Assembly (NCBI RefSeq): GCF_006345805.1
Contig: NC_043023.1
Location: 16,554,001 to 16,618,000 of the forward strand
Direction: 5' to 3'
DNA: 64,000 nt
From: Octopus sinensis
Taxonomy: Eukaryota
Position numbers and translations under genes: made by a program. Under the pieces are notes generated by a model, which was not told where the DNA came from, searched no databases, and saw only the letters and a program-made list of their open reading frames with translations. Positions within the stretch are counted from its first letter, which is position 1; every line of letters starts with the position of its first letter. Positions 23,474-63,243 of this stretch are shown here, one piece after another.

Positions 23474-23607
23474 TTAAAATGTATAAATGATGACGGCAGT
23501 TATCATCCCAATGACAAGGATGGACTTGGTTCTGAGGCTGCTGGTTCCTTGTGCACCACCTGCAAACGATTTCATTTGGATATCATCGGATGCCTCAGGT
23601 GTATCAC
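23474..23607 (-). CDS. Gene C terminal exon: stalk + GPI-anchor-like hydrophobic tail
   Basis: Acceptor tttatctttgtag|GT, phase 1; (S)DTPEASDDIQMKSFAGGAQGTSSLRTKSILVIGMITAVIIYTF*. AATAAA on the minus strand at 23352-23357. Paralogous exons at 46063-46196 and 59867-60000. Confidence 0.8.
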
Positions 23608-23649
23608 CTACAAAGATAAACAGTAAAACATATGTCATTTATATACACT

Positions 23650-24043
23650 TTTCATGGGATGGAAGCACTCCGTCGGTTACGACGACAAGGGTTCCGGTTG
23701 ATCCGAATCAACGGAACAGCCTGCTCGTGAAATTAACGTGTAAGTGGCTGAGCACTCCACAGACACGTGTACCCTTAACGTAGTTCTCGGGGATATTCAG
23801 CGTGACGCAGAGAGTGACGAGGCCGGCCCTTTGAAATACAGGTACAACAGAAACAGGAAGTAAGAGTGAGAGAAAGTTGTGGTGAAAGAGTACAGCAGGG
23901 ATCACCACCATCCCCTGCCGGAGCCTCGTGGAGATTTTAGGTGTTTTCGCTCAATAAACACTCACAACACCTGGTCTGGGAATCGAAACCGCGATCCTAT
24001 GACCGCGAGTCCGCTGCCCTAACCACTGGGCCATTGCGCCTCC
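23650..24043 (-). mobile_element. tRNA(Arg-like)-derived SINE, full length, inserted only in gene C last intron
   Basis: ggaggcgcaatggcccagtggttagggcagcggactcgcgg...ggtttcgattccc (A/B boxes). The empty site ttatatacactcttcat is seen in genes B and A. Confidence 0.75.
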
Positions 24044-24319
24044 ACACACTCTTCATATCAACTTGCTCAAGACTGCCCTTGTTTCCATGGTGAAAATTCC
24101 CTAATTTAAAGTGAGCTAAATTAAAACCTTCCATCAAAATATTAATTTATGTTAATTAATGTTCCCAAAACCAGTTTAATGATGACAAAATTATTTAATT
24201 AAATTATTTATATTTTCAAAATTAATTGAAACTAAGCCAGTATATTCTATTGTGTCTGGGGAGAGTCATTTTCTTTTTGTGCCTTATAATGTAAAACACT
24301 CACCGATAAAATTTCCATA

Positions 24320-25073
24320 GAGACCGAGACCTATGGAAGTATGCTGTGCGTGAGAAGACCCGGCAAGACTAGTGAGACCATAACCCGTAGCCTCTACCTG
24401 GTATGTAGCCAGTCGACTTATACATACCTTTCCTTCTTGGGACACAAAACTCCACTTGTGAAGACCCGTTGAGGCAAGTGAAAATCAAAATCAAAATCAA
24501 AATCAAACCAAATCAAATCAGATATCAGAAAGCAAAACCAAAATTGATCAACATCAATGGAAATTGCAGCTGTGATACCAGTGCTGGTGACAAGTAAGTG
24601 AACCATCCGATCATGGCTGTTGCCAGCGCCGCCCCGACTGGCCTCCGTCCCGGTGGCACGTAAAAAGCACCATCCGTTCGTGGCCGTTGCCAGCCTCGCC
24701 TGGCCCCCGTGCCAGTGGCATGTAAAAAGCGCCATCCGTCCGTGGCCGTTGCCAGCCTCGCCTGGCCCCCGTGCCGGTGGCACATAAAAAGCACCATCCG
24801 ATTGTGGCCGTTGCCAGCCTCGCCTGGCCCCCGTGCCGGTGGCATGTAAAAAGCACCATCCGTCTGTGGCCGTTTGCCAGCTCCGTCTGGCACCTGTGTG
24901 GGTGGCACGTAAAAAGCACCTATTACACTCATGGAGTGGTTGGCGTTAGGAAGGGCATCCAGCCGTAGAAACACTGCCAGATCAGACTGGGCCTGGTGCA
25001 GCCTTCTGGCTTCACAGACCCCAGTTGAACCGTCCAACCCATGCTAGCATGGAAGGCGGACGCTAAATGATGA
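24320..25073 (+). mobile_element. 5'-truncated RTE LINE (last codons + 3' UTR with ~62-bp tandem repeats)
   Basis: Begins RDRDLWKYAVREKTRQD*; ~5 copies of a ~62-bp GC-rich unit at 24610-24920; ends gatgat. Confidence 0.8.
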
Positions 25074-25535
25074 TTATTTTTATTTTCCTAAAATGTTCGT
25101 TGTGTCTTGCAACATTTTCAATAGTCTTGACTATTGAAAAGGTTGCAAGACACAACGAAAATTTTAGGAAAATAAAAATAAGAAATAAGTGGAAATTTTA
25201 CCGGTGAGTGTGTTACATTATAAGGCACAAAAAGAAAATGACTCTCCCCAGACACAACAGAATATGCTTCAACACACGAACTCACATAAAGAATCTTGCA
25301 ACCCAATTGTAAAAAACAAAAAAAAGCCAGTGTATTTTCACAGAATTAAAATAACAAAAGGTTTAAAATGATTTAAATTAAAACCTTTCATTAAAATTTC
25401 ATAGTAATTTATGTTCCAAACCCCAGTTTAGGAGTGATGAAGTCATTTTACTAAATTCTTTATTATTTAAAAAAATTACCTGAAACAAAGGCAATGTATT
25501 TTGGCAGAAATACAAATATAATAACAAAAGGATTA

Positions 25536-28500
25536 GGATATTTTCGGTTTGAATGGCAGTTTCTTCTAGCAGTGTCATATGAAATTGTAACCCATAATTA
25601 TGACCCTAGTATCGATCTATTGCATTTCAATCTGTTTTAGGGTTAGTTAGGGGTGGGGGGAAGGATATCTTTTTTTTACCTCAATGGACGTCATTGATTG
25701 GTTGAAATTGCAGAAATTGAAGGAAAGAAAACAACAAATATCTTACAACTATAGAATTTTCTCAATAAAGCCAAGAGAAAAAGATGTTTTATAAACACAT
25801 TCTACCAGTATACGAAGTTTAAAAATGTTTAGTTATGTGGAAATTATTTTAAAAAACTGCCGTTCAAACCGAAAAGATCCCAAATATCTTACAAACTATA
25901 GGATTTTCTCAATAAAGCCAAGAGAAAAAGATGTTTTATAAACACATTCTACCAGTATACGAAGTTTAAAAGTGTTTAGTTACGTGGAATTTTTTTAAAA
26001 AACTGCCGTTCAAACCGAAAAGATCCCAAATATCTTACAAACTATAGGATTTTCTCAATAAAGCCAAGAGAAAAAGATGTTTTATAAACATATTCTACCA
26101 GTATACGAAGTTTCAAAATGTTAGTTACGTGGAAATTATTTTAAAAAACTGCCGTTCAAACCGAAAAGATCCCAAATATCTTACAAACTATAGAATTTTC
26201 TCAATAAAGCCAAGAGAAAAAGATGTTTTATAAACACATTCTACAGTATACGAAGTTTAAAAGTGTTTAGTTACGTGGAAATTATTTTAAAAAACTGCCG
26301 TTCAAACCGAAAAGATCCCAAATATCTTACAAACTATAGAATTTTCTCAATAAAGCCAAGAGAAAAAGATGTTTTATAAACACATTCTACCAGTATACGA
26401 AGTTTAAAAGTGCTTAGTTACGTGGAAATTATTTTAAAAACTGCTGGTCAAACTGAAAAGATCCCAAATATCTTACAAACTATAGAATTTTCTCAATAAA
26501 GCCAAGAGAAAAAGATGTTTTATAAACACATTCTACCAGTATACGAAGTTTAAAAGTGTTTAGTTACGTGGAATTTATTTTAAAAAACTGCCGTTCAAAC
26601 CGAAAAGACCCAAATATCTTACAAACTATAGAATTTTCTCAATAAAGCCAAGAGAAAAAGATGTTTTATAAACACATTCTACCAGTATACAAAGTTTAAA
26701 AGTGTTTAGTTACGTGGAAATTATTTTAAAAAACTGCCGTTCAAACCGAAAAGACCCAAATATCTTACAAACTATAGAATTTTCTCAATAAAGCCAAGAG
26801 AAAAAGATGTTTTATAAACACATTCTACCAGTATACGAAGTTTAAAAGTGTTTAGTTACGTGGAATTATTTTAAAAAACTGCCGGTCAAACCGAAAAGAT
26901 CCCAAATATCTTACAAACTATAGAATTTTCTCAATAAAGCAAGAGAAAAAGATGTTTTATAAACACATTCTACCAGTATACCCAGTTTAAAAGTGTTTAG
27001 TTACGTGGAAATTATTTTAAAAAACTGCCGGTCAAACTGAAAAGATCCCAAATATCTTACAAACTATAGAATTTTCTCAATAAAGCCAAGAGAAAAAGAT
27101 GTTTTATAAACACATTCTACCAGTACACAAAGTTTAAAAGTGTTTAGTTACGTGGAATTTATTTTAAAAAACTGTCGTTCAAACCTAAAAGATCCCAAAT
27201 ATCTTACAAACTATAGAATTTTCTCAATAAAGCCAAGAGAAAAAGATGTTTTATAAACACATTCTACCAGTATACGAAGTTTAAAAGTGTTTAGTTACGT
27301 GGAAATTATTTTAAAAAACTGCCGGTCAAACCGAAAAGATCCCAAATATCTTACAAACTATAGAATTTTCTCAATAAAGCCAAGAGAAAAAGATGTTTTA
27401 TAAACACATTCTACCAGTATACGAAGTTTAAAAGTGTTTAGTTACGTGGAAATTATTTTTAAAAACTGCCGTTCAAACCGAAAAGATCCCAAATATCTTA
27501 CAAACTGTAGAATTTTCTCAATAAAGCCAAGAGAAAAAGATGTTTTATAAACACATTCTACCAGTATACAAAGTTTAAAAGTGTTTAGTTACGTGGAATT
27601 ATTTTAAAAAACTGTCGTTCAAACCGAAAAGATCCCAAATATCTTACAAACTATAGAATTTTCTCAATAAAGCCAAGAGAAAAAGATTTTTATAAACACA
27701 TTCTACCAGTATACAAAGTTTAAAAGTGTTTAGTTACGTGGAATTTATTTTAAAAAACTGCCGTTCAAACCGAAAAGATCCCAAATATCTTACAAACTAT
27801 AGAATTTTCTCAATAAAGCCAAGAGAAAAAGATGTTTTATAAACACATTCTATCAGTATACGAAGTTTAAAAGTGTTAGTTACGTGGAAATTATTTTAAA
27901 AAACTGTCGTTCAAACCGAAAAGATCCCAAATATCTTACAAACTATAGAATTTTCTCAATAAAGCAAGAGAAAAAGATGTTTTATAAACACATTCTACCA
28001 GTATACGAAGTTTAAAAGTGTTTAGTTACGTGGAATTATTTTAAAAAACTGCCGTTCAAACCGAAAAGATCCCAAATATCTTACAAACTATAGAATTTTC
28101 TCAATAAAGCCAAGAGAAAAAGATTTTTATAAACACATTCTACCAGTATACGAAGTTTAAAAGTGTTTAGTTACGTGGAAATTATTTTAAAAAACTGCCG
28201 GTCAAACCGAAAAGATCCCAAATATCTTACAAACTATAGAATTTTCTCAATAAAGCCAAGAGGAAAAGATGTTTTATAAACACATTCTACCAGTATACGA
28301 AGTTTAAAAGTGTTTAGTTACGTGGAAATATTTTAAAAAACTGCTGGTCAAACCGAAAAGATCCCAAATATCTTACAAACTATAGAATTTTCTCAATAAA
28401 GCCAAGAGAAAAAGATGTTTTATAAACACATTCTACCAGTATACAAAGTTTAAAAGTGTTTAGTTACGTGGAATTTATTTTAAAAAACTGCCGTTCAAAC

Positions 28501-29098
28501 CGAAAAGATCCCAAATATCTTACAAACTATAGAATTTTCTCAATAAAGCCAAGAGAAAAAGATGTTTTATAAACACATTCTACCAGTATACGAAGTTTAA
28601 AAGTGTTTAGTTACGTGGAAATTATTTTAAAAAACTGCCGGTCAAACCGAAAAGATCCCAAATATCTTACAACTATAGAATTTTCTCAATAAAGCCAAGA
28701 GGAAAAGATGTTTTTTAAACACATTCTACCAGTATACGAAGTTTAAAAGTGTTTAGTTACGTGGAAATTATTTTAAAAAACTGCTGGTCAAACCGAAAAG
28801 ATCCCAAATATCTTACAAACTATAGAATTTTCTCAATAAAGCCAAGAGAAAAAGATGTTTTATAAACACATTCTACCAGTATACAAAGTTTAAAAGTGTT
28901 TAGTTACGTGGAATTTATTTTAAAAAACTGTCGTTCAAACCGAAAAGATCCCAAATATCTTACAAACTATAGAATTTTCTCAATAAAGCCAAGAGAAAAA
29001 GATGTTTTATAAACACATTCTACCAGTATACGAAGTTTAAAAGTGTTTAGTTACGTGGAAATTATTTTAAAAAACCTCCAGTCAAACGGAAAAGATCC
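25536..29098 (+). repeat. MITE expanded into a satellite of ~23 x ~146-bp units
   Basis: Left TIR ggatattttcggtttgaatggcagttt at 25536. Unit caaatatcttacaaactatag...aaaactgccgttcaaaccgaaaagatcc repeats from ~25734 to 29098. 8-bp TSD aaggatta/aagggtta. Confidence 0.9.
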
Positions 29099-29935: not shown

Positions 29936-30534
29936 ATCAGCTGAGTCCATCGAGAAGCTGGCCTCACCGCTTTCCTTCAGCCAGGAAGGGCAAGCAGTTA
30001 CCTTATCTCTCTGGTTGCCACTGCAAAAGGGATCATGTGGTAGACATGTCTGAAAGGGCTGATGACCAGCAGTTGTCCTTTTGTTGAAGCTCAAATAATC
30101 TTTTTCAGGTTTGAAGAAGAGACAAATAAGGATAAAGAGAAAAGTAAGGGTGGAAGTGCTGGCTTCCATTGCAGTTTCTTGATAGATGGGTGAGAGAGGT
30201 GAGCATTGCCTGAGTGTGCACCTGTAGACTGGGAGAGGGCATCCACCCTGGTGGTCAGGGAGACCATGGATTTTGTGGGCTTTCTCCCTGTGTGACTAGT
30301 TGCCATTGCAAAAGGGATCGTGTGATGGACATGTCTGAAAGCGCTGAAGACCAGCAATTGCCATTTTATCAAAACCCTAATAAACTTTTTCAGGTTTCAC
30401 TTGAAGAGGAAAATCAGGGTGGAGAGGTAAGTGCTGGCTTCCAAGCAGTTTGTTGAAAGGTGGGTGAGCATTACCTGAGTGAATGGGCCTTCTTTCAGAG
30501 TGTACCTGTATATTGGAGAGGAAAGACCGGGAGA

Positions 30535-31405
30535 CGGCATCAACCCGCTACGGAACAGATCAAGGTCTGAAAAATACAACAAACTACAGAAACCCATCAG
30601 GACAACAAATAATGGAAAAACAGTATGTGAAAGATTTAGGCATCCACATGGGAACCAGCCTAAAATTCAGAGAACACCTTGACTCAGTCTGTCTTACTGC
30701 AAGAAAGTACAGCGGGTGGATCTTGCACACCTTCAAATCAAGAGATACCTCAACAATGAAAACCCTCTGGAACAGTATGATACTTCCGAGGATTGACTAC
30801 TGTTCTCAGTTGTGGTCACCAACAACAAAAGGCCAACTATCTAAGATGGAATCGCTCCAAAGAAATTTTACCTCATACTTCTCAGAAACGAGGGACCTGG
30901 ACTATTGGCAAAGACTCAAAACCTTGAAGATGTACTCAATAGAAAGAAGATTTGAGCGATACCGAATTATATACATTTGGAAAATGATAGAGCAAAAGGT
31001 ACCAAACTTTGGTATCAAAACCTACCACTCACTGCGCCACGGAAGACGCTGCCAGCTACCACCAATCAACAAAAAGGCTGGCCAGGCAGCAAAAACCCTG
31101 CGAGAGTCAAGTCTGTTGGTTCGAGGAGCACAACTATTCAACTCCATTCCGGTACATGTCAGAAATCTATCAGGATGCAGTGTGGAATCATTCAATTTGC
31201 AGCTGGACAGATACTTAAGCACCATTAGAGATGAACCCCATCTCCCAGGATATACACAACGAGCACAAACTGACTCAAACTCGCTCCTACACATGTCAAA
31301 ATTAAACAGAGAATACAACCTGGCAACCACACCAGACTCGGAGGGTGGAGTCTTCGACTTGGCCTGAGCATGGACTCAAACTCAAATGAAATGAAATGAA
31401 ATGAA
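30535..31405 (+). mobile_element. 5'-truncated CR1-like LINE (RT C-terminus, (TGAAA)n tail), gene C specific
   Basis: ORF 30483-31367 with KDLGI, PRIDYCSQLWSP, LYSIERR-like motifs; tail gaaatgaaatgaaatgaaa. It interrupts a sequence that is contiguous in gene B (gggagagggcatccacc). Confidence 0.85.
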
Positions 31406-31617
31406 ACCCTGGTGGTCAGGGAGACCATGGATTTTGTGGGCTTTCTTTACGTGTAGCCCTTGAAAGTCCCCCCACTATCAGGGGTTTTACTTTGAATTTC
31501 TTTTATTCTTTGTATGACTTTTTACATGCTAAAACCCACACTGTACCCTCCCGAATGTTTTCCTTTGTGTTAGCCCTCTGTGGTTAATAAAGAAATTATT
31601 ATAAATCATTTCCTTAC

Positions 31618-31866
31618 TCTTTATATCCAAATCAATTTTTCCAACATTAAGGTTCTCATCTTCGAATTTCCAAGTCAAACATTTCTCAGTTACTTTTCTG
31701 ATCCAAAGCTTGGAGGTATCTCCACTATGTGTTACTTTATAGTCAGTGCCATCAGCGCATGTCCTGTCACATTCATATTTATAATTGTCGCACTTCCAAA
31801 CCACCGGTCGTTCCATATCAGATATTGTTATCGAAAGGGTGACGTTTCCATTGAGCACAGCAGTTC
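31618..31866 (-). CDS. Gene C Ig-like domain exon (249 nt, phase 1-1)
   Basis: Acceptor tttctttatttcag|GA, donor AAGA|gtaagg; (G)TAVLNGNVTLSITISDMERPVVWKCDNYKYECDRTCADGTDYKVTHSGDTSKLWIRKVTEKCLTWKFEDENLNVGKIDLDIK. Same length and phase in all three paralogs. Confidence 0.85.
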
Positions 31867-32146
31867 CTGAAATAAAGAAATCAGTTAAGAAGTTTGCTTT
31901 TCAATCATACGGTTCTGGGTTCAGTCCCACTGCAGAGCACCTTGGGAAAGTGTCTTCTACTACAGCATCAGGCTTGTGAGTGGATTTTCAAGATGGAAAC
32001 TGAAAGAAGCCCATTGTATGTGTGTGTGTATATATATACATACACACTTGTGTGTTTCAAAGGCTCGTGAGTGTATTTGATAGATGGAAACTGAAAGAAG
32101 CCCATTGTTTATATATACATATATATACATATATATATATACATAT

Positions 32147-32205
<59 letters not shown>

Positions 32206-32820
32206 CATATATATATAGGCGCAGGAGTGGCTGTGTGGTAAGTAGTTTGTTTACCAACCCCATGGTTCCGGGTTCAGTCCCACTGCGTGGCACCCTGGGC
32301 AAGTGTCTTCTACTGCAGCCTGTGTGGATTTGGTAGACGGAAACTGAAAGAAGCCTGTTGTTTGTTTATATGTGTGCTTGTTTCTCACTACCACTTGCCA
32401 ATAAGTATTGGTGTGTCTACGTCCCAGTAACTTAGTGGTTCAGCAAAAGAGACCAATAGAATAAGTCCTGGGGTCAATTCATTCAACCGGAAACCCTTTA
32501 AGGCAGAACATCAGCATCATTATGATGCCCCCTGTTCCATGCTTTGTGGATAAGAGTTTTTCATTCTCAACAGTAGGATGCTCTTCCTGTCACAAACCTT
32601 CATCTGTTTCCAAACAAGGCTATAACATCCCATATATACACACAGTGGGCTCCTTTTAGCTCCTGTCTACCTAATCCACTCACAAGGCTTTTGCTGGCCT
32701 GGGGCTATAGTGGAGGACACTTAAACAAGGTGCCATACAGGGGGACTGGACCTTAAATTATGCGCTTGGAAAGAAAAGTTCCTAATCACAGCCAGGCCTT
32801 CACCTCACGTCCAAATTTAA

Positions 32821-33350
32821 CCCTTTAGCATTTAAACTAGTGAATATCATCATCATCATCGTTTAACATCCGCTTTCCATGCTAGCATGGGTTGGACGAT
32901 TTTGACTGAGGGCTGGCGAACCAGATGGCTGCACCAGGCTCCAATCTTGATCTGGCAGAGTTTCTACAGCTGCATGTCCTTCCTAACGCCAACCACTCCG
33001 AGAGTGTAGTGGGTGCTTTTTATGTGCCACTGGCACGGGGGCCCCTCAGGTGGTACTGGCAAAGACCTCGCTCGAATCTTTTTACACATGCCACCGGCAC
33101 AGGTGCCAGTAAGGTGACGTTGGTAACGATCACGCTCGAATGGTGCCTAGTGATATCAGATCCAAGTACTCTACTTGTCTGATGTTCAAACTAGCCATAT
33201 CTGACCTCTCCCATCTAAACTACAATGTCATTCTGGAAATAAAGCATCACATCATTGAAATCTCAAAGCTATGAGATAATCCATGATTAATCCAAAACAT
33301 TGAGAATAAAAAAGGATTACATTTGACCGAATAATCTGAATGCTAAAGGG
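32821..33350. mobile_element. piggyBac-type MITE (TTAA|CCC...GGG|TTAA) interrupted by an RTE tail
   Basis: ttaa-ccctttagcatt at 32817 and aatgctaaaggg-ttaa at 33354; RTE 3' UTR (minus) at ~32845-33135. Confidence 0.65.
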
Positions 33351-33599
33351 TTAATAGTTTTGCCCCTGGAAATTAAAAGGGAAAATGTGCAATAGAGACC
33401 ATCAAAAGAAATTAGACATCTAATTACACTCAGCCTAATGAGTTTTAATTTAATGAGATTTATGTTTACTGGAACATAACTTCATCAGACATGGGTGTAC
33501 CCCTGATTAAACCATGTCCCTATCCACTCACTCCCACCCACCCTTATATAATGCAGGGTCACTGCAGTAAGACACGGTTTCCTGTCCTTCTATCATACC

Positions 33600-33995
33600 C
33601 ATTTCTTTACTACCCATAAGGGGCTAAATGAGGACAGACAAACGGATTAAGGCGATTACATCGACCCCAGTGCGTAACTTGTCCTTAATTTATCGATCCC
33701 GAAAGGATGAAAGACAAAGTCAACCTCGGCGGAATTCGAACTCAGAACGTAAAGACAGACGAAATACCTATTTCTTTACTACCCTCAAGGGGCTAAACAT
33801 AGAGGAGACAAACAAGGGCAGACATAGGTATTAAGTCGATTACATCGACTCCAGTGCATAACTGGTACTTATTTAATCAACCCCAAAAGGATGAAAGGTA
33901 AAGTCGACCTTAGCGGAATTTGAACTCAGAATGTAGCGGCAGACGATATACCGCTAAGCCTTTTCGCCCGCCGTGCTAACGATTCTGCCAGCTCA
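33600..33995 (-). mobile_element. SINE family N tandem units (shared with gene B, 49780-50300)
   Basis: Consensus match; orthologous position in both paralogs. Confidence 0.7.
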
Positions 33996-34312
33996 CCTGT
34001 GTTTCTATCATACCTGGTATACCTCTCAACACCTGACATAAAACCATCTCCCTCTCTACTATGCTCTTCAGTGAAGGTTTGTTTCCTTCCTCTTCCTTTG
34101 CCTTTCCCGTTATTTGGTGACTTCACTAGGGGCCAGTTATGTGCAAAGAAAGGCTCCAGTGCACTGTAAAATGATTGGCACCGAAAAGGGGTCAATGATG
34201 CCAGCATGGAACGTGGACCTTGAATGACGGAGGATAAGCATCGTAACCATAATCCTCTTTAGAATGACAATCATAATCCCAGAGAAATGGAAACCAATTC
34301 AGTAGTGTTTAT

Positions 34313-34710
34313 ATCATCCTCATTGTTTAACGTCCACTTTCCATGCTAGCATGGGTTGGATGGATCGACCGGGGTCTGTGAAGCCAGAAGGCTGCACCAG
34401 GCCCAATCTGATCTGGCAATGTTTCTACAGCTGGATGCCCTTCCTAACGCCAACCACTCCGTGAGTGTAGTGTAGTGGGTGCTTTTTATGTGCCAGGTGA
34501 GGCTGGCAAACGGCCAAGATCGGCTGGTGCTTTTTACATGCCACTGGCACGGAGGCCCGTCGGGGCGGCGCTGGCCACGTTCCGATGGTGCTTTTTACGT
34601 GCCACCGGCACTGGTATCACAGCTACAATTTCCATTGATGTTGATCGATTTTGATTTTGATTCCACTTGCCTCAACAGGTCTTCACAAGTAGAGTTTTGT
34701 GTCCCAAGAA
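34313..34710 (-). mobile_element. RTE 3' UTR fragment, absent from gene B
   Basis: Matches the RTE tail; gene B joins 50605-50610 without it. Confidence 0.7.
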
Positions 34711-35086
34711 GGAAAGGTATGCATAATAAAAAAGGAAAGGTGTGCAATAATAAAAAAATGCACCCACCACACTTTGTAAAGGGGTCAGTGTTAGGAAGGT
34801 CATCAAGAAATCGAAACCTTGCCAATGCCTGCAAAGGAGCCTGCCACAATGCTGTGGCTTGTTGGATCCATGGCAAGATTGAAGGTGGCCATTTTATAAG
34901 TACCCCCACAAGCCATCTTGACCCTGGTTAAAACCCACTGCTCTAGTGTTTCCTCAATGTGTATTTCTGGCTCTTTAGCCCTTCTCGATGGTCAGAATAA
35001 AAACTTTAAAGAAACCAAAAGCAAAATAGTGACTAAAAGCTTTGAATTAAGAGAAAGAAATAGAAGACAGAACTGAAAAGGTAATG

Positions 35087-35514
35087 GGATCTTTTCGGTT
35101 TGAACGGCAGTTTTTTCTAGCGGTGTCATATGAAATTGTCACCCATAATTATGACCCTAGTATCGATCTATTGCATTTCAATCTGTTTTAGGGTTAAAGT
35201 TAGGATTAGGGGTGGGGGAAGGGTATCTTTCCTTCTTCAGAAACGTAAATAAACTCAATCTGTTTCTTAAACGAGGGACATATTCATACGGCACAGAATG
35301 TGCTTTTTTTTACCTCAATAGACGTCATTGATTGGTTGAAATTGCAGAAATTGAAGGAAAAAAAACAACAAATATCTTACAACTATAGAATTTTCCCGAT
35401 AAAGCCAAGAGAAAAAGATGTTTTATAAACACATTCTACCAGTATACGAAGTTTAAACGTGTCTAGTTACGTGGAAATTATTTTTAAAAACTGCCGGTCA
35501 AACGGAAAAGATCC
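35087..35514 (+). mobile_element. MITE, 428 bp, ~28-bp TIRs, 8-bp TSD (hAT/Merlin/P class); parent of the 146-bp satellite
   Basis: aggtaatg|ggatcttttcggtttgaacggcagtttt ... aaaactgccggtcaaacggaaaagatcc|aggtaatg. Confidence 0.85.
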
Positions 35515-35565
35515 AGGTAATGTCTAGTTTAAAAGGGGAAAAAGGTTTGTTTATCCATTATTTAC

Positions 35566-35604
35566 CACTTTGCTTAATTTCATAACTTGCCGCACTTGCC
35601 AAAC
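35566..35604 (-). CDS. Gene C 39-nt mini-exon (end of signal peptide + mature N-terminus)
   Basis: Acceptor ttttcatcttttacag|GT, donor G|gtaaat; (C)LASAASYEIKQS(G), phase 1-1. Needed because joining exon 1 directly to the Ig exon would create TGA. Confidence 0.8.
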
Positions 35605-36471
35605 CTGTAAAAGATGAAAACAAATTTTTGATTTTAAGATGAAATTATTCAAAATATTGTGAATAAATGAACGTTACATTAGAAGGAAAATGGCTATTTC
35701 ATTGGCAGAGTTTCAGATCAGGATCTCCACAAGGGTTAGATTACTCTTACTCTTTACTTGTCTCAGCCACCTGACTGCGGCCATGCTAGAGCACCGCCTT
35801 TAGTCGAGCAAATCGACCCCGGGACTTATTCTTTGTAAGCCCAGTACTTATTCTATCGGTCTCTTTTGCTGAACCGCTAAGTGACGGGGACGTAAATACA
35901 CCAGCATCGGTTGTCGAGCAGTGCTACGGGGACAAACACAGACACACAAACACATATATATACGACGGGCTTCTTTCAGTTTCCGTCTACCAAATCCACT
36001 CACAACGCTTTGGTCGGCCCGGGGCTATAGCAGAAGACCCTTGCCCAAGATGCCACGCAGTGGGTAAAAAGTACCTGTCAAAACAGAGATAGACCAATTT
36101 ATGTGGGTGCCCTATTCCAGACCCCTGTCAAATGGCAGACTGACAAATAAACCTTTACCGAAAAGGATTTTGCCATGGTTTTCGAGGGCTTAGTGCAAAA
36201 AAAAAAATCGGTCTGGGGCTGGGTAGAGAAGGGATTCAGGTGAAAAAAATGACTGAAACAAGTAAAAGAGTATATATTTTAGTGTTTGTATATTATTACA
36301 TCAAAGGTTAATGTAGAAAAAATTTAGTTATTACACACACATTAATACCGACAAATCCTAAGTTTCATGTGAGACAACCAATTTTTTTTTTAATAAATTT
36401 TCAAAAATTGTTTTTTTTCATAAAAAGCTTTCTCCTATCATCTTTAAAAATATATAATAGAGAAACAATTC

Positions 36472-37711
36472 TTAACCCTTTTGATACCAACCTGGCTGAA
36501 ACCACCTCTGACCCTGTAGTACAAATGTCTTGTTTTCATAAGTCTTGAATTAAAATCTTCCACCAAACCTTAGTCACAATTTATGTTCCTAATACTAGCT
36601 TAATGATGACTAAATTATTTACTAAATTCTTTGTTATATTTAAAATTAATTGAAAGAAAGAAACACAGAAAATCTCAACAGAAATATGGTAACAAAAGGG
36701 TTAAAAATATATAATAGAGAAACAATTCTTAACCCTTTTGATATGAACCTGGCTGAAACCACCTCTGACCCTGTAGTACAAATGTCTTGTTTTCAAAAGT
36801 TTTGAATTAATATCTTCCACCAAACCTTAGTCACAATTTATGTTCCTAACACTAGCTTAATAATAACTAAGTTATTTTACTAAATTCTTTATTATATTTA
36901 AAATAATTGAAAGAAACACAGAGCATCTCAACAGAAATATGGTAACAAAAGGCTTAAAAATATATAATAGAGAAACAATTCTTAACCTTTTGTTACCAAC
37001 CCGGCTGAAACCGGCTCTGGCTCTGAGTACAAATGTCTTGTTTTCATAAGTTTTGAATCAAAATCTTCCACCAAACCTTAGTCACAATTTATGTTCCTAA
37101 CACTAGCTTAACAATAACTAAGTTATTTTACTAAATTCTTTGTTATATTTAAAATTAATTGAAAGAAACACAGAACATCTCAACAGAAATATGGTAACAA
37201 AAGGCTTAAAAATATATAATAGAGAAACAATTCTTAACCCTTTTGTTACCAACCCGGCTGAAACCACCTCTGACCCGTAGTACAAATGTCTTTTTTCATA
37301 AGTTTTGAATTAAAATCTTCCAACAAACCTTAGTCACAATTTATGTTCCTGACACTAGCTTAATGATAACTAAGTTATTTTACTAAATTCTTTGTAATAT
37401 TTAAAATAATTGAAAAGAAACATAGAGCATCTCAACAGAATATGGTAACAAAAGGCTTAAAAATATATAATAGAGAAACAATTCTTAACCTTTTGTTACC
37501 AACCCGGCTGAAACCAACTCTGACCCTGTAGTAAAATGTCTTGTTTTCATAAGTCTTGAATGAAAATCTTCCACCAAACCTTAGTCACAATTTATGTTCC
37601 TAACACTAGCTGAATGATGACTAAGTTATTTTACTAAATTCTTTGTAATATTTAAAATAATTGAAAGAAACACAGAGCATCTCAAAATAAATACAGTGAC
37701 GAAAGGCTTAA
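36472..37711. repeat. Five tandem ~252-bp units (TTAA-flanked MITE + 22-bp host spacer)
   Basis: Units start ~36472, 36729, 36982, 37234 and 37485; each is ttaacccttttg[a/t]tacc ... ggtaacaaaagg[g/c]ttaa + aaatatataatagagaaacaattc. Confidence 0.8.
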
Positions 37712-37858
37712 GTGTGTTATGAAAAAAACCCATTTGAAAAGTCCCCATCAAAACAGAGAAAACCCAATTGATGTAGGACGTATTTCAGATTTGTGTCCAC
37801 CTGTATAGGGGTAATTAACAAGAGTGAATTATGAAGAAAAAGAATAATAAAAACTTAC

Positions 37859-37895
37859 AAAATAATGCAGACAAACAGAACTTTAGAATGTCCAT
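37859..37895 (-). CDS. Gene C first coding exon (signal peptide start)
   Basis: Acceptor gttgtttttcag| at 37921/37920, ATG at 37895, MDILKFCLSALF, donor T|gtaagt, phase 1. Confidence 0.8.
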
Positions 37896-38817
37896 GATCT
37901 GTGAAAATAATTTTCTAAACCTGAAAAACAACAAAAATATTTCAGTTCCACTAATTTCACACAAGCAAACAATAGTAGATATCTAATTAAGAGTCATCGT
38001 CATCATCATTATTATCGTCGAACGTCCGTAATCTTAACGGATGATACTAAAAATTAAATGCTTTAGTTTCACTTTCATAAATATAATCTTAACTCTCTGA
38101 TGTGTCAGAGAAATTTCGCTTAATAATACGCAATTTTTTCTTCATAAATTTGATAAGATTTTAATTACATTATGTATTTGTCCTTCATACAGAAAAATCA
38201 AACGTTGTTTACCGTTTTTCCGGGTGTGAAAACCTAGTTTAGGGAATCGCTCGCCTGAAATCGTCCACAAATTTTCAAGATATCACGGGAGAAATACGAA
38301 AATGAAAGTGTTAAAGAGAGACAATTGATGAGATGACTCATATAAACGGAACCTTTCCATCGATCCGATCCGATCCGATTCGGTAGAATGTGTCGTATAA
38401 AACATCTTTTACTCTGAGTGTTGTTGAGAAAAATTTGTATTTTCGAAGTTATTTCGTTTTAAAGTTGGTGTATTTCGGTAATTTTAACCAATCAATGACG
38501 TGAATAAAATTACTGCGGTTCTTTGTCGACTTCCGGCGGTGTATACATTTCGTTTGTCACTGTTATTTATGGACCTATTTTATCTCAATTACGTTTGTAT
38601 GAATAAATAAACGAATCTATCTGAAGCATGTTTATTTCATGACAGCACCACCATCGTTCGGGCATTTCTACTGCTTTTAGGGTTTTTTCAGCTATTTTCG
38701 GAAAGACGTTTTTGTCCTCCCTCCTCTTCCAATTTCTTCATAAATAAATAATAGTGAAATTATTGTATACAGTGCTCAGGTGCACCACAACTTGTCAAAA
38801 GTGCGTATAAAGCATAT

Positions 38818-46062: not shown

Positions 46063-46196
46063 TTAAATGATGACGGCAGTTATCATCCCAATGACAAGGA
46101 TGGACTTGTTTCTGAGGCTGCTGGTTCCGTGTGCTCCACCTGCAAAAGATTTCAATGTGATATCATCATATGCCACAGATATTGGTGTCATATCAC
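46063..46196 (-). CDS. Gene B terminal exon (canonical acceptor lost; cryptic in-frame acceptor at 46139)
   Basis: DMTPISVAYDDITLKSFAGGAHGTSSLRNKSILVIGMITAVII*. The homologous acceptor reads ctttgTGT instead of ctttgTAG; ttttgcag|GT GGA is in the right phase. AATAAA (-) at 45933-45938. Confidence 0.6.
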
Positions 46197-47729: not shown

Positions 47730-47978
47730 TCTTTATCTCCAAATCAATTTTTCCAACATTATGGTTGCCATCTTCAAATTTCCAAGTCGAACAATTCTTA
47801 GTTATTTTTCTGATCCAAAGTATGGCGGTATCTCCAGTATGTCTCACTTTATAGTTAGGGCCATCAGCGCATATCATGTTACATTGATATTTATAATAGC
47901 CGCACTTCCAAACCACCGGTCGTTTCATATCGGGTGTTGTTATCGTAAGGATGAGCTTTCTATTGAGAACAGCAGGTG
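47730..47978 (-). CDS. Gene B Ig-like domain exon (249 nt, phase 1-1)
   Basis: tctttatttcag|CA ... AAGA|gtaagg; (A)PAVLNRKLILTITTPDMKRPVVWKCGYYKYQCNMICADGPNYKVRHTGDTAILWIRKITKNCSTWKFEDGNHNVGKIDLEIK. Confidence 0.85.
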
Positions 47979-51358: not shown

Positions 51359-51406
51359 AGGTAATGTCTAGTTTAAAAGGGGAAGAAGTTTTGTTAATCC
51401 ATTTAC

Positions 51407-51445
51407 CATTTTGGTGGATACGATAACCTTTTGCACTCGTCAAAC
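51407..51445 (-). CDS. Gene B 39-nt mini-exon
   Basis: tttcatcttttacag|GT ... G|gtaaat; (C)LTSAKGYRIHQN(A), phase 1-1. Confidence 0.8.
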
Positions 51446-52004: not shown

Positions 52005-52046
<42 letters not shown>

Positions 52047-53419: not shown

Positions 53420-53462
53420 AAAATAATGCAGACAAACAACAAAAGAACTTCAGAATGTCCAT
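53420..53462 (-). CDS. Gene B first coding exon (signal peptide start)
   Basis: Acceptor at 53488/53487, ATG at 53462, MDILKFFCCLSALF, donor T|gtaagt. Confidence 0.8.
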
Positions 53463-53669: not shown

Positions 53670-54016
53670 GGCGTAGGAGTGGCTTTGTGGTAAATAGCTT
53701 GCTTACCACATAGTTCTGGGTTCAGTCCCACTGCGTGTCACCTTGAGCAAGTGTCTTCTACTATAGCCTCGGGCCGACCAAAACCTTGTGAGTAGATTTG
53801 GTAGACGGAAACTGAAAAGAAGCCCATCGTATATATATATTATATATATATATAGGCGCAGGAGTGGCTGTGTAGTAAGAAGTTTGCTTACCAACCACAT
53901 GGTTCCGGGTTCAGTCCCACAGCGTGGGACCTTGGGCAAGTGTCTTCTACTATAGCCTTGGGTCTAACAAAGCCTTGTGGTGGATTTGGTAGACAGAAAC
54001 TGAAAAGAAGCCCATC

Positions 54017-54051
<35 letters not shown>

Positions 54052-54460
54052 CGCAGGAGTGGCTGTGTGGTAAGAAGTTTGCTTACCAACCACATGGTTC
54101 CGGGTTCAGTCCCACTGCGTGGCACCTTGGGCAAGTGTCTTCTACTATAGCCTTGGGCCTAACAAAGCCTTGTGAGTGGATTTGGTAGACGGAAACTGAA
54201 AGAAGCCCGTCGTATATATGTATACATATGTGTATGTGTGTGTGTGTATGTTTGTGTGTCTGTGTTTGTCCCCCCAACATCGCTTGACAACCGATGCTGG
54301 TGTGGTTACCTCCGCATTACTTAGCGGTTCGGCAAAAGAGACCGATAGAATAAGTACTAGGCTTGCAAAGAATAAGACCTGGGTGTCGATTTGCTCGACT
54401 AAAGGCGGTGCTCCAGCATGGCCGCAGTCAAATGACTGAAACAAGTAAAAGAGTAAAAAG
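53670..54460 (+). mobile_element. Tandem SINE family C heads plus one full copy
   Basis: Four heads starting ~53670, 53855, 54049 etc.; tail ends gtaaaagag. Confidence 0.75.
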
Positions 54461-54870: not shown

Positions 54871-56245
54871 TCATCATCATCATCATCATCATCATCATTT
54901 AACGTCCGCTTTCCATGCTGGCATGGGTTGGATGGTTCAACTGGGGTCTGGGGAGCCCGAAGGCTGCACCAGGCCAGTCAGATCTGGCAGTGTTTCTACA
55001 GCTGGATGCCCTTCCTAACGCCAACCACTCCGTGAGTGTAGTGGGTGCTTTTTATGTACCACCGACTCAGGTGCCAGACGAGGCTGGCGAACGGCCACGC
55101 TCGGATGTGGTACTGGCTACAGCCACGTTTAGATGGCTTCACTTATGTGCCACCAGCACTGGTACCACAAAACTACAAATTCCATTGATGATGATCGATT
55201 TTGATTTGATTCTTTGATTTTTGATTTTCACTTGTCTCAACAGGTCTTCACAAGTAGAGTTATGTGTCCCAAGAAGGAAGGTATGCACAGGTGGACTGAC
55301 TACGTCCCAGGTAGGGGCCATGGGTAATGGCCTCATGTGTCCTGCCGGGTCTTCTCACGCACAGCATACTTCCAAAGGTCTCGGTCTCTGGTCATTTCCT
55401 CGGTGAGACCTAAAGAACGAAGGTCGTTCTTCACCACCTCGTCCCAGGTTTTCCTGGGTCTACCTCTTCCACAGGTTCCCTCAACTGCTAGGGTGTGGCA
55501 CTTTTTCACACAACTATCTTCATCCATTCTTACTACGTGTCTATACCAGCGTAGACGCCTCTCTTGCACACCACATCTGATGCTTCTTAGGTCCAACTTT
55601 TCTCCTAAGGCACTTACACTCTGTCGGGTATGAACACTGACATTACACATCCAACGGAGCATACCGGCTTCATTTCTTGCAAGCTTACGCATATCCTCAG
55701 CAGTCACGGCCCATGTTTCACTGCCATGTAGCATGGCTGTTCGCACACATGCGTCATACAGTCTGCCTTTTACTCTGAGCGAGACACCTTTTGTCACCAG
55801 CAGAGGTAAGAGCTCTCTGAACTTTGCCCAGGCTATTCTTACTCTAGCAGATACACTTTCGGCACACCTACCCCCGCTACTGACTTGGTCACCTAGGTAA
55901 CAGAAACTATCAACTATTTCAAGTTTTTCTCCCTGGAATGTGGCAGAAGATGGTCTCTGTGCATTTTCAGTGTTTATTGCACCAGAGCATCTGCCACATA
56001 CAAAAACTATATACCTAGTTAGCTTTCCTTTGACATTGCTGCACCTCTAATCCTTGCTTCCATGCCTGAAACTTCTCCTCGAGTTCCGATAGTGATTCAG
56101 CAATTAGAGCAAGGTCATCAGCATAGAGGAGCTCCCAGGGGCATCCTGTCTTGAATTCCTCCGTTATTGCCTGGAGGACTATGATAAATAGGAGGGGGCT
56201 GAGGACTGAGCCTTGGTGGACCCCAACCTCCACCCGGAATTCTGC
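54871..56245 (-). mobile_element. 5'-truncated RTE LINE with complete 3' UTR and (GAT)n tail
   Basis: ORFs 56015-56233 (GVHQGSVLSP, LLYADDL) and 55333-55797 (HGSETW, RRLRWY, GRGRPRKTW) are contiguous with the 3' UTR seen dispersed across the window. Confidence 0.9.
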
Positions 56246-56343
56246 ACTAACGAATATCTATATATACACACACACACACTCATATATATATATTATATAT
56301 ATATATATATTATATATATATATATACACATATATATATATAT

Positions 56344-59866: not shown

Positions 59867-60000
59867 TTAAAATGTATAAATGATGACGGCTGTTATCATC
59901 CCAATGACAAGGATGGACTTGGTTCTGAGGCTGCTGGTTCCTTGTGCACCACCTGCAAACGATTTCATTTGGATATCATCGGATGCCTCAGGTGTATCAC
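59867..60000 (-). CDS. Gene A terminal exon (GPI-anchor-like tail)
   Basis: tttatctttgtag|GT; the protein sequence is identical to the gene C terminal exon. AATAAA (-) at 59747-59752. Confidence 0.8.
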
Positions 60001-60020
60001 CTACAAAGATAAACAATAAA

Positions 60021-60560
60021 CCACTCTCAGTATTACGGTACTCAAGACTCAAGAGATTAAGACTCTGTTCCTTAGAGCGTAGGCGAGAAAGATATGCCAT
60101 AATATACATCTGGAAGATCCTGGAGGGACTTGTCCCAAACTTTGGGTTCGAGAGTTACACAAATGCCAGAACTGGGCGCCACTGCGTGGTGCCAAGGACT
60201 CCAAATTTGCCATCAAGATGTAGGACAAGAAACTGTGATAGCCTGGGCTTCAGAGGCCCACAGCTCTTCAATATCCTCTCGAAGAACCTGAGAGACCTGC
60301 ATGGGGTGGATGCAGATGTCTTTAAAGTAAAACTGGATCTCTTCCTGTCAGGTATCCCAGATGAACCAACTTCACGGCAGGAGGTGCAGATGAGGGCAGC
60401 TGCATCGAACTCTCTCATGCACCAAATGGCAGTTGCTAAAAAGCTTTCGTGAAGTAAAACCAAGTAGCAACACCAAATGGCGGTGCCCCAGCATGGCCAC
60501 AGCCCATGAGCTGAAACTAGATAAAATAAAATTAAAAAAATAAAATAAATAAAACATATT
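60021..60560 (+). mobile_element. 5'-truncated CR1/L2-like LINE 3' end, inserted ~20 nt from the gene A acceptor
   Basis: LCSLERRRERYAIIYIWKILEGLVPNFG...GPQLFNIL...FKVKLDLFLSGIPDEP; A-rich tail. Confidence 0.85.
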
Positions 60561-60985: not shown

Positions 60986-61744
60986 TATATCATTTATATA
61001 CACTCTTCATACCAACTTGCCCAAGACTGCCCTTGTTTCCATGGTGTAAATCCCCTGTTTTAAAGTGATTCAAATTAAAACCTTTCCTTAAAATTTCATG
61101 TTAACTTTTGTTCCAAACAGCAGCTTAATAAGAACAAAGTATATATTTTAGTGTGTGTATATTATTACATCAAAGGTCAATGTAGAAAAAATTTAGTTAT
61201 TACACACACATTAATACCGACAAATCCTAAGTTTCATCTTGTGGAGGTATGTATGTGCTGTCTATGTAGTATGTGAGACAACCAATTTTTTTTAAAATAA
61301 ATTTTCAAAAATTGTTTTTTTTCATAAAAAGCTTTCTCCTATCATCTTTAAAAATATATAATAGAGAAACAATTCTTAACCCTTTTGATACCAACCTGGC
61401 TGAAACCACTTCTGACCCTGTAGTACAAATGTCTTGTTTTCATAAGTTTTTAATTAAAATCTTCCACCAAACCTTAGTCACAATTTATGTTCCTAACACT
61501 AGCTTAATGATAATTAAATTATTTCACTAAATTCTTCATAGGTTTTCAAAATAACCGAAAACAAAGGCTGTATATTTTAACAGAAATATACTAACAAAAG
61601 CTTTGAAGTGAACTAATTTAAAACTTCACATTCAAATTTCAAAGCCATTAAAAAATCAATAGAAGTGACTTTTTGTGAATTTTCTATCCCAAACCCAAGC
61701 AAAATGCCCGAAACTTGATACGCCAATTGAATGCCAGCTAGCTG

Positions 61745-62050
61745 TATGGTTGTTCCTTCTTGAGCCATGCCTAGCTCATAAGGGCCAGTTTCCCGGTTTC
61801 TTGGCATATAGGTTCCCCACCTGGATGGGACGCCGGCCCATCGCAGGTGAGCTGCAAGATGCAGGAGGAAAGAGTGAGAGAAAGTTGTGGCGAAAGAGTC
61901 AGCAGAAGTTTCGCCATTACCTTCTGCCGAGCCACGTGGAGCTTAGGTGTTTTGAACATAAACACACACATTACCCGGTCTGAGATTCGAACCCGCGATC
62001 CCTCGACTGCGAGTCCGATGCTCTAACCACTAGGCCATGTGTCTCCACAG
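61745..62050 (-). mobile_element. tRNA-derived SINE (possible V-domain type)
   Basis: tggcctagtggttagagcatcggactcgc...gggttcgaatctc (A/B boxes); cctgcgatgggccggcgtcccatccagg resembles V-domain SINEs (from memory, not searched). Confidence 0.6.
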
Positions 62051-62589
62051 CTAGCTGTATGTGATTGGTCGGAGATTTGGACAGTACTCAAGTGTATGTG
62101 CGCATGCACGCAGCTGTATATGCATGCACTAGCACTATGGCCCGGCGTCGCCGGGTCATAATGCTAGTCTCTCTATATATAAATGGGCAAATGTCTGTCT
62201 GTGTGTGTGTGTGTCCTTTATACAAATTCCACAATTTTTCAGTTAGCGGGCTTGCACTTTCTATGGTCATTCAAAACTATCCAAGGGTGGTCGTGCACAT
62301 CTTTACATTTCCCCAGTCACCCCGCAAAGCCATTAAAAAATCAATAGAAGTGACATTTTTGTGAATTTTCTATCCATAACCGCAAGTCCACTTCTCTAAC
62401 CACTAGGCCATATGCCTCCACTACTCACCTTGATGGTCAGGGTGATCATGGATTTTGTGGGTTTTCTTTATGTATAAGCCTCAGATTACTACCCCACTTG
62501 TTATATGACACTAAAACCCACACTGTACCATCTTCAATGTTTTTCTTTGTGTTAGCCTTCTGTGACTTATAAAGGAATTATTAATATTA

Positions 62590-62975
62590 CTGTGTGGTAA
62601 GTAGCTTGCTTACCAACCACATGGTTCTGGGTTCAGTCCCACTGCATGGCACTTTGGGCAAGTGTCTTCTACTATAGCCTCGGGCCAACCAAAGCATTGT
62701 GAGTGGATTTGGTAGACGGAAACTGAAAGAAGCCCGTCGTATATATGTATATATATATATGCGTTTGTGTGTCTGTGTTTGTCCCCCTAGCATTGCTTGA
62801 CAACTGATGCTGGCATGTTTATGTCCCCTTTACTTTGCGGTTCGGCAAAAGAGACCGATAGAATAAGTACTGGGCTTACAAAAGATTAAGTCCTGGGGTC
62901 GAGTTGCTCGACTAAAGGCGGTGCTCCAGCATGGCCGCAGTCAAATGACTGAAACAAGTAAAAGAGTAAAGAGTA
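62590..62975 (+). mobile_element. SINE family C, ending ~20 nt from the gene A Ig-exon donor
   Basis: Consensus match. Confidence 0.8.
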
Positions 62976-62994
62976 TTATGAATTGCTTCCTTAC

Positions 62995-63243
62995 TGTTTA
63001 TCGTCAATTTGGTTCTTCCAAGGTTGATATTGTCGTCTGCAAACGCCCAAGTCAAACAGTCCTTTGTTACTTTTCTGATTAAGAGCATAGAAGTATTCCC
63101 ACTGTGGCTAACCTGGTAATTAGTGCCGTTAGCGCATGTCCTGTCGCATTCATATTTATAATTCTGGCACTGCCAAACCACTGGTCTTCGCATATTCGGT
63201 ACTGTAATACTGAGATTGGCTTTTCCGTTCAGTTTAATATTTT
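62995..63243 (-). CDS. Gene A Ig-like domain exon (249 nt, phase 1-1); upstream exons lie outside the window
   Basis: ctttctttcag|AA ... AACA|gtaagg; NIKLNGKANLSITVPNMRRPVVWQCQNYKYECDRTCANGTNYQVSHSGNTSMLLIRKVTKDCLTWAFADDNINLGRTKLTIN. Confidence 0.85.

Follow-up and report, generated by a model that had tools for sequence, protein, structure and literature searches.

A 64,000-nucleotide stretch of the Octopus sinensis genome (positions 16,554,001 to 16,618,000 of contig NC_043023.1, assembly GCF_006345805.1; hereafter, the window, with positions numbered from its first letter) carries on its minus strand a tandem cluster of three paralogous genes, here referred to as A, B, and C. We consider it likely that these genes belong to an octopod-restricted tandem family of very small type I surface glycoproteins, each built around one divergent immunoglobulin (Ig)-like domain and probably held in the membrane by a glycosylphosphatidylinositol (GPI) anchor, with a diversifying recognition function. 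The evidence comes from the exon structure of the genes, the predicted fold of their products, and the way in which young copies differ from one another.

The sequence-only reading had proposed that gene C is assembled from four tiny exons, and that model stands exactly as proposed. Positions 37895 to 37859, 35604 to 35566, 31866 to 31618, and 23607 to 23474 join into 459 nucleotides (nt) including the stop, encoding 152 amino acids (aa), and every intron starts with GT, ends with AG, and is in phase 1. A translated search with the gene C protein located the other copies. The 249-nt domain exon occurs exactly three times in the window (31866 to 31618, 47978 to 47730, and 63243 to 62995), the tail exon three times (that of B at about 46139 to 46063), and exon 1 twice; a scan of the whole window in six reading frames with a family hidden Markov model (HMM) found no fourth domain exon. 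Exon mapping thus bears out the head-to-tail, minus-strand paralogs with symmetric phase 1-1 exons (Table 1). The exons had also been described as identical in size, which holds for the domain exons (249 nt in A, B, and C) but not for exon 1, which has 43 nt in B versus 37 in C. Likewise, B and C are complete paralogs, but A is represented within the window by exons 3 and 4 only. Because gene A spans 20 kb in the O. sinensis reference, its exons 1 and 2 would lie approximately 16 kb past the end of the window.

The last exon occurs in two forms. Genes C and A have in common an internal acceptor (at 23559 and 59952, respectively), use of which removes a 16-aa acidic linker, DTPEASDDIQMKSFAG; after this optional linker, the product of gene C exon 4 continues with GAQGTSSLRTKS and a 15-residue, GPI-signal-like hydrophobic C terminus. 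In gene B, the AG that the earlier model had used for exon 4 is destroyed, and the frame is open only via the internal acceptor, TTTGCAG/GT at 46139. The gene B product ends in ...AVII, three codons short of the stop in A and C, an ending also found in the family members that we label P0004, P0009, and P0010. The 152-aa form had been taken as the standard for the family; it is the form shorter by 16 aa that gene B, the Octopus bimaculoides orthologs, and the cDNA described below share.

The window is collinear with O. sinensis CM016885.1 at 16.09 to 16.13 Mb, and the noncoding divergence of approximately 2% indicates another haplotype or a very close relative. An expectation that annotation based on open reading frames (ORFs) would fragment or miss the genes was wrong, because models of them exist in NCBI RefSeq (LOC115225109, LOC115225106, and LOC115225115), both exon-4 acceptors included; all three loci are labeled “uncharacterized protein.” Gene C is LOC115225109 (RefSeq protein match to isoform X2, with 98% identity over 93% of gene C), gene A is LOC115225106 (isoform X2 has the same residues as A exons 3 and 4, as compared by eye), and gene B approximates LOC115225115 (isoform X8 begins with the residues of B exons 1 to 3, also compared by eye). 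The two acceptors separate isoforms X1 and X2 of LOC115225106 and isoforms X2 and X3 of LOC115225109. Since the RefSeq proteins agree with the predicted products, the exon pattern is, on sequence grounds, not due to chance, and a chance ORF was rejected as an explanation. The exact 152-, 136-, and 135-aa products were absent from the protein collection searched.

Transcript evidence comes from run SRR3401912, described as an octopus metatranscriptome (PMC11662614). A 1067-nt contig assembled from this run encodes, between 5′ and 3′ untranslated regions, a family member of 138 aa in one unbroken frame. It is collinear with the spliced short form of gene C apart from two indels of 3 nt within the putative signal-peptide region; the joins between exons 2 and 3 and between exons 3 and 4 are gapless. 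Genes of this four-exon layout are thus transcribed in an octopus and spliced in the predicted way, with the short tail join; the contig is evidence for the family design and not for A, B, or C themselves. We found no paper that names these LOC identifiers or three Sequence Read Archive (SRA) runs, and none that describes an octopus Ig-like tandem or orphan family like this one.

The single Ig-like domain first suggested from the letters alone was recovered by structure prediction, structure comparison, and profile matching. We worked from a domain alignment of 43 sequences, built from a profile search of 1.84 billion representative sequences (33 hits); the family HMM was rebuilt without bacterial HYR_4C repeats, whose inclusion had inflated their scores, and a second, word-indexed homolog search with the 43-sequence profile returned five proteins and nothing new. 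From the single 152-aa sequence, AlphaFold reached a predicted local distance difference test (pLDDT) score of 37.5. With the 43-sequence alignment, AlphaFold2 gave a pLDDT of 96.2 and a predicted template modeling (TM) score (pTM) of 0.87 for a beta-sandwich of eight strands (domain residues 4 to 6, 16 to 21, 29 to 33, 36 to 40, 50 to 55, 58 to 63, 72 to 76, and 82 to 86). The top 50 Foldseek matches of this model in the PDB were Ig V-type and I-set domains (probability 1.0, TM score 0.56 to 0.70, identity 10 to 21%), the best being antibody VL domains, titin I27 and I81, obscurin Ig32, and twitchin Ig26. When the profile was run against PDB sequences, the matches were weak and, without exception, to the Ig superfamily (IgSF), namely, titin at E = 0.002, followed by obscurin, myotilin, CD2, and CD79b. 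The tryptophan of strand C (W31 of the domain, within predicted strand 29 to 33) is invariant in all 43 sequences, and the 39-nt and 249-nt domain exons are in phase 1-1 in all copies.

The cysteines of the domain, at residues 33, 40, 44, and 70, form a pattern of their own. Cys40-x3-Cys44 is near-invariant. Cys33, at the end of strand C, and Cys70, at the start of strand F, covary (22 sequences with both, 15 with neither, and 4 discordant), and some members without this pair have an alternative cysteine pair at 76 and 81. Aligned with obscurin, the segment Y-K-Y-E-C-D-R-T-C is a six-residue insertion after strand C.

Other assignments were tried and rejected. For HYR/HYR_4C (Pfam PF23237), the bacterial repeat proteins P0036 and P0039 came up in the profile search only at E = 3e-6 to 1e-4, and neither gene C nor any of the 43 domains matched HYR_4C. 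An FN3-type domain was considered and rejected. As for a transposon-encoded protein, the gene products have no transposase, reverse transcriptase, or other mobile-element match, and the long interspersed nuclear element (LINE) fragments in the window are separate elements, intronic or intergenic.

The proposal of a recognition-type family is matched by an evolutionary signature of that type, in which exons diverge faster than introns. Genes B and C, which lie in a recent segmental duplication of approximately 8 kb (Table 1), differ at 35 of 249 sites in exon 3 (14.1%) versus 17 of 473 in the flanking intron (3.6%; Fisher p = 6e-7), a comparison kept within the homologous block, which ends less than 250 nt downstream of C exon 3; in exon 2, they differ at 13 of 39 sites. 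We compared six young copies (B, C, and four from O. sinensis and O. vulgaris loci), with six to eight of the dozens of family copies sampled as DNA. Of the 35 exon-3 differences, 21 are due to states found among these copies in B alone and 5 to states found in C alone; for the other 9, both alleles occur in other copies. B-private changes occur at 21 of 249 exon sites versus 5 of 412 intron sites (p = 9e-6), and those in the exon comprise 17.5 nonsynonymous and 2.5 synonymous changes. The ratio of nonsynonymous to synonymous divergence (dN/dS) ranges from 0.7 to 4.1 among the six young copies, being at least about 1 in 13 of 15 pairs, and from 0.2 to 0.4 in old comparisons, with a value of 0.27 for gene A versus its O. 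bimaculoides ortholog. Variable sites are enriched in predicted loops (28 of 40, versus 17 of 42 in strands; p = 0.009). The number of N-glycosylation sequons also differs, with one in C, two at other positions in B, and three in A.

The opposite pattern is seen at the end of the genes and between the window and the reference. Between A and C, the domain exons differ at 30% of bases, with synonymous divergence (dS) above 1, and the tail segments are 98.6% identical, such that tail exons appear to have been homogenized and domain exons (the “heads”) diversified. Compared with the O. sinensis reference, the window differs at 197 of 9,794 noncoding sites (approximately 2.0%) and at 1 of 465 sites in the exons compared; the exon-3 regions of A, B, and C have zero amino acid changes relative to the reference proteins, as compared by eye. 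The pattern described by these comparisons is a burst of amino acid change after duplication, with constraint afterwards, which argues against gene B being a pseudogene.

The possibility that gene B is a decaying duplicate, with its excess changes reflecting lost constraint, has points on both sides. In its favor, the upstream exon-4 acceptor and the family NxT sequon in strand B are missing from gene B, which also has by far the most private substitutions. However, relaxed constraint cannot make an exon diverge sevenfold faster than the introns of the same gene, the frame of B and all its used splice sites are intact, and the 111 residues of B exons 1 to 3 match the O. sinensis reference despite the noncoding difference of approximately 2%. 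The early stop after ...AVII, moreover, is common to apparently functional orthologs in two species. We regard decay of gene B as very improbable, and we rejected the idea of a pseudogene cluster on the basis of intact frames and splice sites and of exon conservation relative to the reference.

The family was suspected to be lineage specific, and every named relative is indeed from Octopus or Argonauta (O. sinensis, O. vulgaris, O. bimaculoides, and Argonauta hians). In the profile search of 1.84 billion representatives, in which coverage of squid, cuttlefish, and nautilus is uncertain, no protein from these lineages was found at E = 0.001. The sole non-cephalopod relative found, a weak link, was LOC124119024 of the abalone Haliotis rufescens (profile E = 2e-11; hhalign E = 1.6e-4, probability 51%). 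One 21-Mb chromosome of O. sinensis carries at least 12 family loci, with positions 5 Mb or more apart. Members have one to four domains, with a 13-aa linker exon before each, two kinds of signal exon (MDILKF... and MAKWILF...), and two kinds of C terminus. One of these is the short hydrophobic end of the window genes, and the other is a 23-residue helix followed by a short, basic tail. Genes of the small design are annotated elsewhere: LOC115225458 (P0004) is a 135-aa gene of four exons, and O. bimaculoides has annotated 134- and 135-aa products, namely, isoform X2 of LOC106883299 and LOC106883582.

Judging by its sequences, the family is also present in mixed architectures. The octopod paralogs P0020, P0023, P0025, P0031, P0032, P0034, and P0037 have one N-terminal family domain, followed by one to three different cysteine modules (KPKIE...C.Y...A.CS.P...I.C..., one with a faint C2-set-like Pfam match) and a transmembrane segment. 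In P0028 (O. sinensis XP_036358517.1, “zinc finger protein 239-like”), C2H2 zinc fingers precede a family Ig-like domain at residues ∼186 to 276; this is probably a chimeric gene model that fuses two expanded octopus families. Intron 1 of the gene A ortholog of O. bimaculoides contains, in antisense orientation, a degenerate family domain (L003, 11979 to 12194; 32% identity) that is interrupted by an in-frame stop and looks like a dead inverted duplicate.

Under the reading that we favor, the signal peptide, split over exons 1 and 2, would be cleaved on entry to the secretory pathway, leaving an Ig-like domain encoded by the 39-nt and 249-nt exons and a short Gly/Ser/Thr stalk. The hydrophobic end would most likely be exchanged for a GPI anchor, with other members using a transmembrane helix, and the N-glycosylated product would be displayed on the outer membrane leaflet, where the variable loops may bind ligands. 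Each duplicate would have been driven toward a new specificity and thereafter kept at it, as happens in fast-evolving clusters of recognition or immune receptors. Immune, allorecognition, gamete, or neuronal roles are guesses.

Several observations count against this reading, and they concern in turn the fold, the mode of divergence, the independence of gene B, and the anchor. At the level of the fold, no Pfam Ig model (I-set, V-set, ig, or Ig_3) matches the window proteins at the curated threshold, and gene C has no Ig match at all. The canonical disulfide between strands B and F is also absent, strand B (TLSITI) having no cysteine and strand F no Y.C motif. Many I-set domains likewise lack the B-F disulfide. 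Sub-threshold Pfam I-set matches occur in 10 of the 43 family domains (best E = 0.0068), and the four-domain paralog P0011 scores 23.6 bits against a cutoff of 23.7. As modeled, the domain is Ig-like, with predicted V/I topology and a noncanonical disulfide pattern, and it falls outside current curated sequence models.

Regarding the mode of divergence, dN/dS values above 1 are not individually significant, because synonymous counts are only 1 to 7 per pair. Furthermore, failures of the four-gamete test are frequent in exon and intron, and therefore gene conversion between paralogs contributes. An alternative account would attribute the exon-limited divergence mainly to such interlocus conversion, with exon patches derived from distant paralogs and without positive selection on point mutations. 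It can draw on the 9 of 35 B-C exon-3 differences for which both alleles exist in other paralogs, on the 59 of 136 informative site pairs that fail the four-gamete test, and on B exon 2, which is closer to LOC115225458 than to C. Synonymous divergence in exon 3 (0.107) exceeds intron divergence, homogenization between A and C is clear in the tail exons, and exons are the only parts still alignable between distant paralogs. Yet, the 21 differences private to B among the six sampled copies are mostly nonsynonymous, B lies at a low synonymous distance (0.05 to 0.12) from all sampled copies, unlike what a donor as distant as A would give, and four-gamete failures are equally many in introns, so that conversion is not confined to exons. 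We thus think it rather unlikely that conversion is the main cause, although a donor among the unsampled family copies is conceivable, and prefer diversification of the domain by amino acid change.

As for the independence of gene B, RefSeq has no 135-aa gene B product, and B exons 1 to 3 instead go into long multi-domain isoforms of LOC115225115. This locus has at least 12 isoforms, of which X8, X9, X11, and X12 open with B exons 1 to 3 and continue with differing sets of domain and 13-aa linker cassettes and a transmembrane exon. Gene B, and perhaps the small four-exon products generally, might accordingly not stand alone, and the exons might be cassettes of a large, alternatively spliced, multi-domain transmembrane unit. 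All exons are in phase 1-1, and therefore any combination of them would be in frame; the absence of the 135-aa product from the protein collection also fits. However, gene B has a tail exon to itself, where the internal acceptor is intact and the reading frame stays open, equivalent single-unit genes are annotated (LOC115225458, LOC106883299 isoform X2, and LOC106883582), and a full-length single-domain mRNA exists. The family HMM scan found none of the downstream LOC115225115 cassettes in the window; therefore, any transcript joining B to them would have to pass over gene C entirely and more than 47 kb in total, and the multi-domain isoforms are computational models, which may be artifacts of modeling among near-identical paralogs. 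We treat this alternative as a possibility, though an unlikely one, and retain the reading of gene B as a small gene in its own right.

A broader version, which we consider a long shot, is that the array works as a cassette system, in which the signal exon of one unit is combined with varying downstream domain exons and the product ends in either the GPI-type or the transmembrane form. Every 39-nt linker exon and 249-nt domain exon being in phase 1-1, such combinations would stay in frame, and the LOC115225115 models are of the form that a cassette system predicts. If true, a single locus would yield receptors of one to four domains in many combinations, a cephalopod counterpart to Dscam or clustered-protocadherin diversity with a new Ig variant.

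The two ends of the protein were assessed by rule-of-thumb inspection. The N terminus of gene C has a hydrophobic core (mean Kyte-Doolittle value of approximately 2.0 over residues 3 to 17) and an ASA/A motif. The C terminus has an uncharged run of 13 to 16 residues with 0 residues after it and a polar spacer, SLRTKS, before it, and small-residue omega candidates (SGA, AQG, and GTS) lie 8 to 12 residues upstream of the terminal run. Such a layout is more in keeping with a GPI signal than with a transmembrane helix. Paralog P0001, for its part, has a 23-residue helix and a 7-residue tail. The GTSSLRT stalk motif, however, is unusually constant for a GPI signal, being kept across species. The short hydrophobic end could alternatively be a permanent membrane anchor, or the main products could be secreted via splicing of the tail. 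The paralogs P0001 and P0011, from the same family, have a real transmembrane helix, and RefSeq isoforms X2 and X3 of gene C end in ...KSILSLG, without the hydrophobic run. Against a permanent anchor are the shortness of the uncharged run, its position at the very end of the protein, where no basic residue flanks it toward the cytoplasm, and the presence of several small-residue omega/omega+2 triplets at a suitable distance upstream. On balance, we lean modestly toward a GPI anchor signal and see the alternatives as improbable, without dismissing them.

Comparison with known systems places the family within a familiar kind of molecule. The octopus domain is like the I-set and V-set domains of the IgSF (titin I27, obscurin Ig, and antibody VL) in its predicted eight-strand Greek key with a C′ strand, its strand-C tryptophan, its phase 1-1 exons, and a D-E-F motif, Y.V....S.L.I..V. 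It differs in having no B-F disulfide, a covarying cysteine pair, and the inserted Y-K-Y-E-C-x3-C after strand C. The abalone protein LOC124119024 shares the motif C-x3-C ... Y.......STL.I..V.....TW.I.D.N with the octopus domain, but it is only 22 to 23% identical and has five Ig-like repeats and a transmembrane segment, another N-terminal half of the domain, and extra cysteines at the domain ends. Unlike the octopus window proteins, it passes the Pfam I-set threshold (56.8 bits).

Thy-1 (CD90) belongs to the smallest kind of IgSF surface molecule, its signal peptide being followed by a single small, N-glycosylated Ig-type domain and a GPI-type C-terminal signal. In this overall architecture, the octopus proteins as predicted would resemble it. 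Thy-1, however, is a conserved single gene, whereas the octopus family is large, fast evolving, and tandem. The vertebrate CEACAM/PSG, KIR, and SIRP clusters are tandem, with phase-1 Ig exons, GPI-anchored or transmembrane sisters, a fast-evolving ligand-binding domain, and conserved or homogenized anchor exons. The octopus cluster is alike in its tandem duplication, phase-1 exons, two predicted anchor types, fast domain, and conserved tail; the homology ends at the fold, the octopus proteins are much smaller, and their transmembrane forms have no evident cytoplasmic signaling motif. In snake venom phospholipase A2 (PLA2) and conotoxin genes, mature-protein exons evolve faster than introns. 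The octopus genes are similar in that the mature segment outpaces flanking introns and the signal and anchor parts are conserved; their products differ in ending with a putative membrane-anchor signal and would not be free secreted toxins. A squid brain glycoprotein has been described as Thy-1-like (Williams, Tse and Gagnon 1988, Immunogenetics 27:265, as cited in PMC2189447). Neither Thy-1 nor any squid protein was among the hits of the profile search of 1.84 billion representatives or of the Foldseek and PDB-sequence searches. By analogy, Thy-1-type minimal IgSF molecules and CEACAM-type tandem clusters are the closest functional counterparts, and neither is a sequence relative.

Table 1. 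Exons and duplicated segments of the gene cluster, in window positions
Feature	Position	Strand	Description
Gene C exon 1	37859..37895	-	37 nt; ATG and first part of the putative signal peptide, MDILKFCLSALF; GT donor, phase 1; homologous to B exon 1
Gene C exon 2	35566..35604	-	39 nt, phase 1-1; last part of the putative signal peptide, probable cleavage site ASA/AS, and domain strand A
Gene C exon 3	31618..31866	-	249 nt, phase 1-1; remaining Ig-like domain sequence, which contains four Cys and one NVT sequon
Gene C exon 4, long form	23474..23607	-	134 nt including stop; internal alternative acceptor at 23559 gives short form 23559-23474
Gene B exon 1	53420..53462	-	43 nt; 6-nt insertion relative to C
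Gene B exon 2	51407..51445	-	39 nt; 13 differences from C exon 2; surrounding intron DNA ∼95% identical
Gene B exon 3	47730..47978	-	249 nt; fast-diverged Ig-like domain; 35 differences from C, 21 private to B
Gene B exon 4	46063..46139	-	Short form only; upstream acceptor lost; stop after ...AVII; product of 135 aa
Gene A exon 3	62995..63243	-	249 nt; translation agrees with O. sinensis LOC115225106
Gene A exon 4	59867..60000	-	Long form, internal acceptor at 59952; peptide identical to that of C exon 4
Gene C half of ∼8-kb segmental duplication	30011..38016	-	Partner is gene B 46345-53557; non-repeat intron blocks 89 to 98% identical
Gene C tail-exon segment	23206..23630	-	98.6% identity over 422 nt to A tail segment 59601-60020

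The introns and spacers of the cluster hold many repeats. A 146-bp satellite is present in 23 copies (96% matching) at 25735 to 29098, inside intron 3 of gene C; its unit occurs once in intron 2 of gene B (51214 to 51358) and forms an array of approximately 9 kb in an O. vulgaris locus (L002, ∼38188 to 47371). Intron 1 differs in length between B and C because of the copy number of a 251-bp tandem repeat, with five copies in C (36444 to 37711) and about two in B (52812 to 53290). Between genes B and C is a 181-bp tandem array of 7.4 copies, and long (TACA)n and (TA)n microsatellites are also found in the window (the positions 42640 to 43986, 41543 to 42178, and 63443 to 63758 cover the array and microsatellites). 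A unit of 170 to 195 bp that resembles a short interspersed nuclear element (SINE) occurs more than 15 times across the window, e.g., at 18408 to 18620, 44127 to 44485, and 53657 to 54229.

Fragments of a non-long terminal repeat (non-LTR) retrotransposon (RVT_1, Exo_endo_phos_2, and a PHD-like finger, split over three ORFs) lie on the plus strand at 4906 to 7977, and related fragments lie on the minus strand at 55333 to 56250. Possible LINE 3′ ORFs, without a Pfam match, are at 30483 to 31367 and 59880 to 60452. In the O. sinensis reference locus (L005), an annotated 102-aa gene on the opposite strand, equivalent to the plus strand of the window, extends over more than 21 kb (19078 to 40309) and overlaps genes A and B.

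To our knowledge, octopods are without antibody-type adaptive immunity, and little is known of their surface recognition molecules beyond the expanded protocadherins. The genes described here represent a variant, particular to one lineage, of a molecule type that is well known, and not a new system; they were present in RefSeq but uncharacterized. The family is restricted to octopods, lacks a curated domain model, and has an unusual Ig disulfide pattern. Its evolution, a clean case of exons outpacing their own introns, would suit molecules that face changing ligands, such as those of pathogens, gametes, or self and non-self cells, and its members may serve as a small, easily expressed set of candidates for cephalopod recognition biology.

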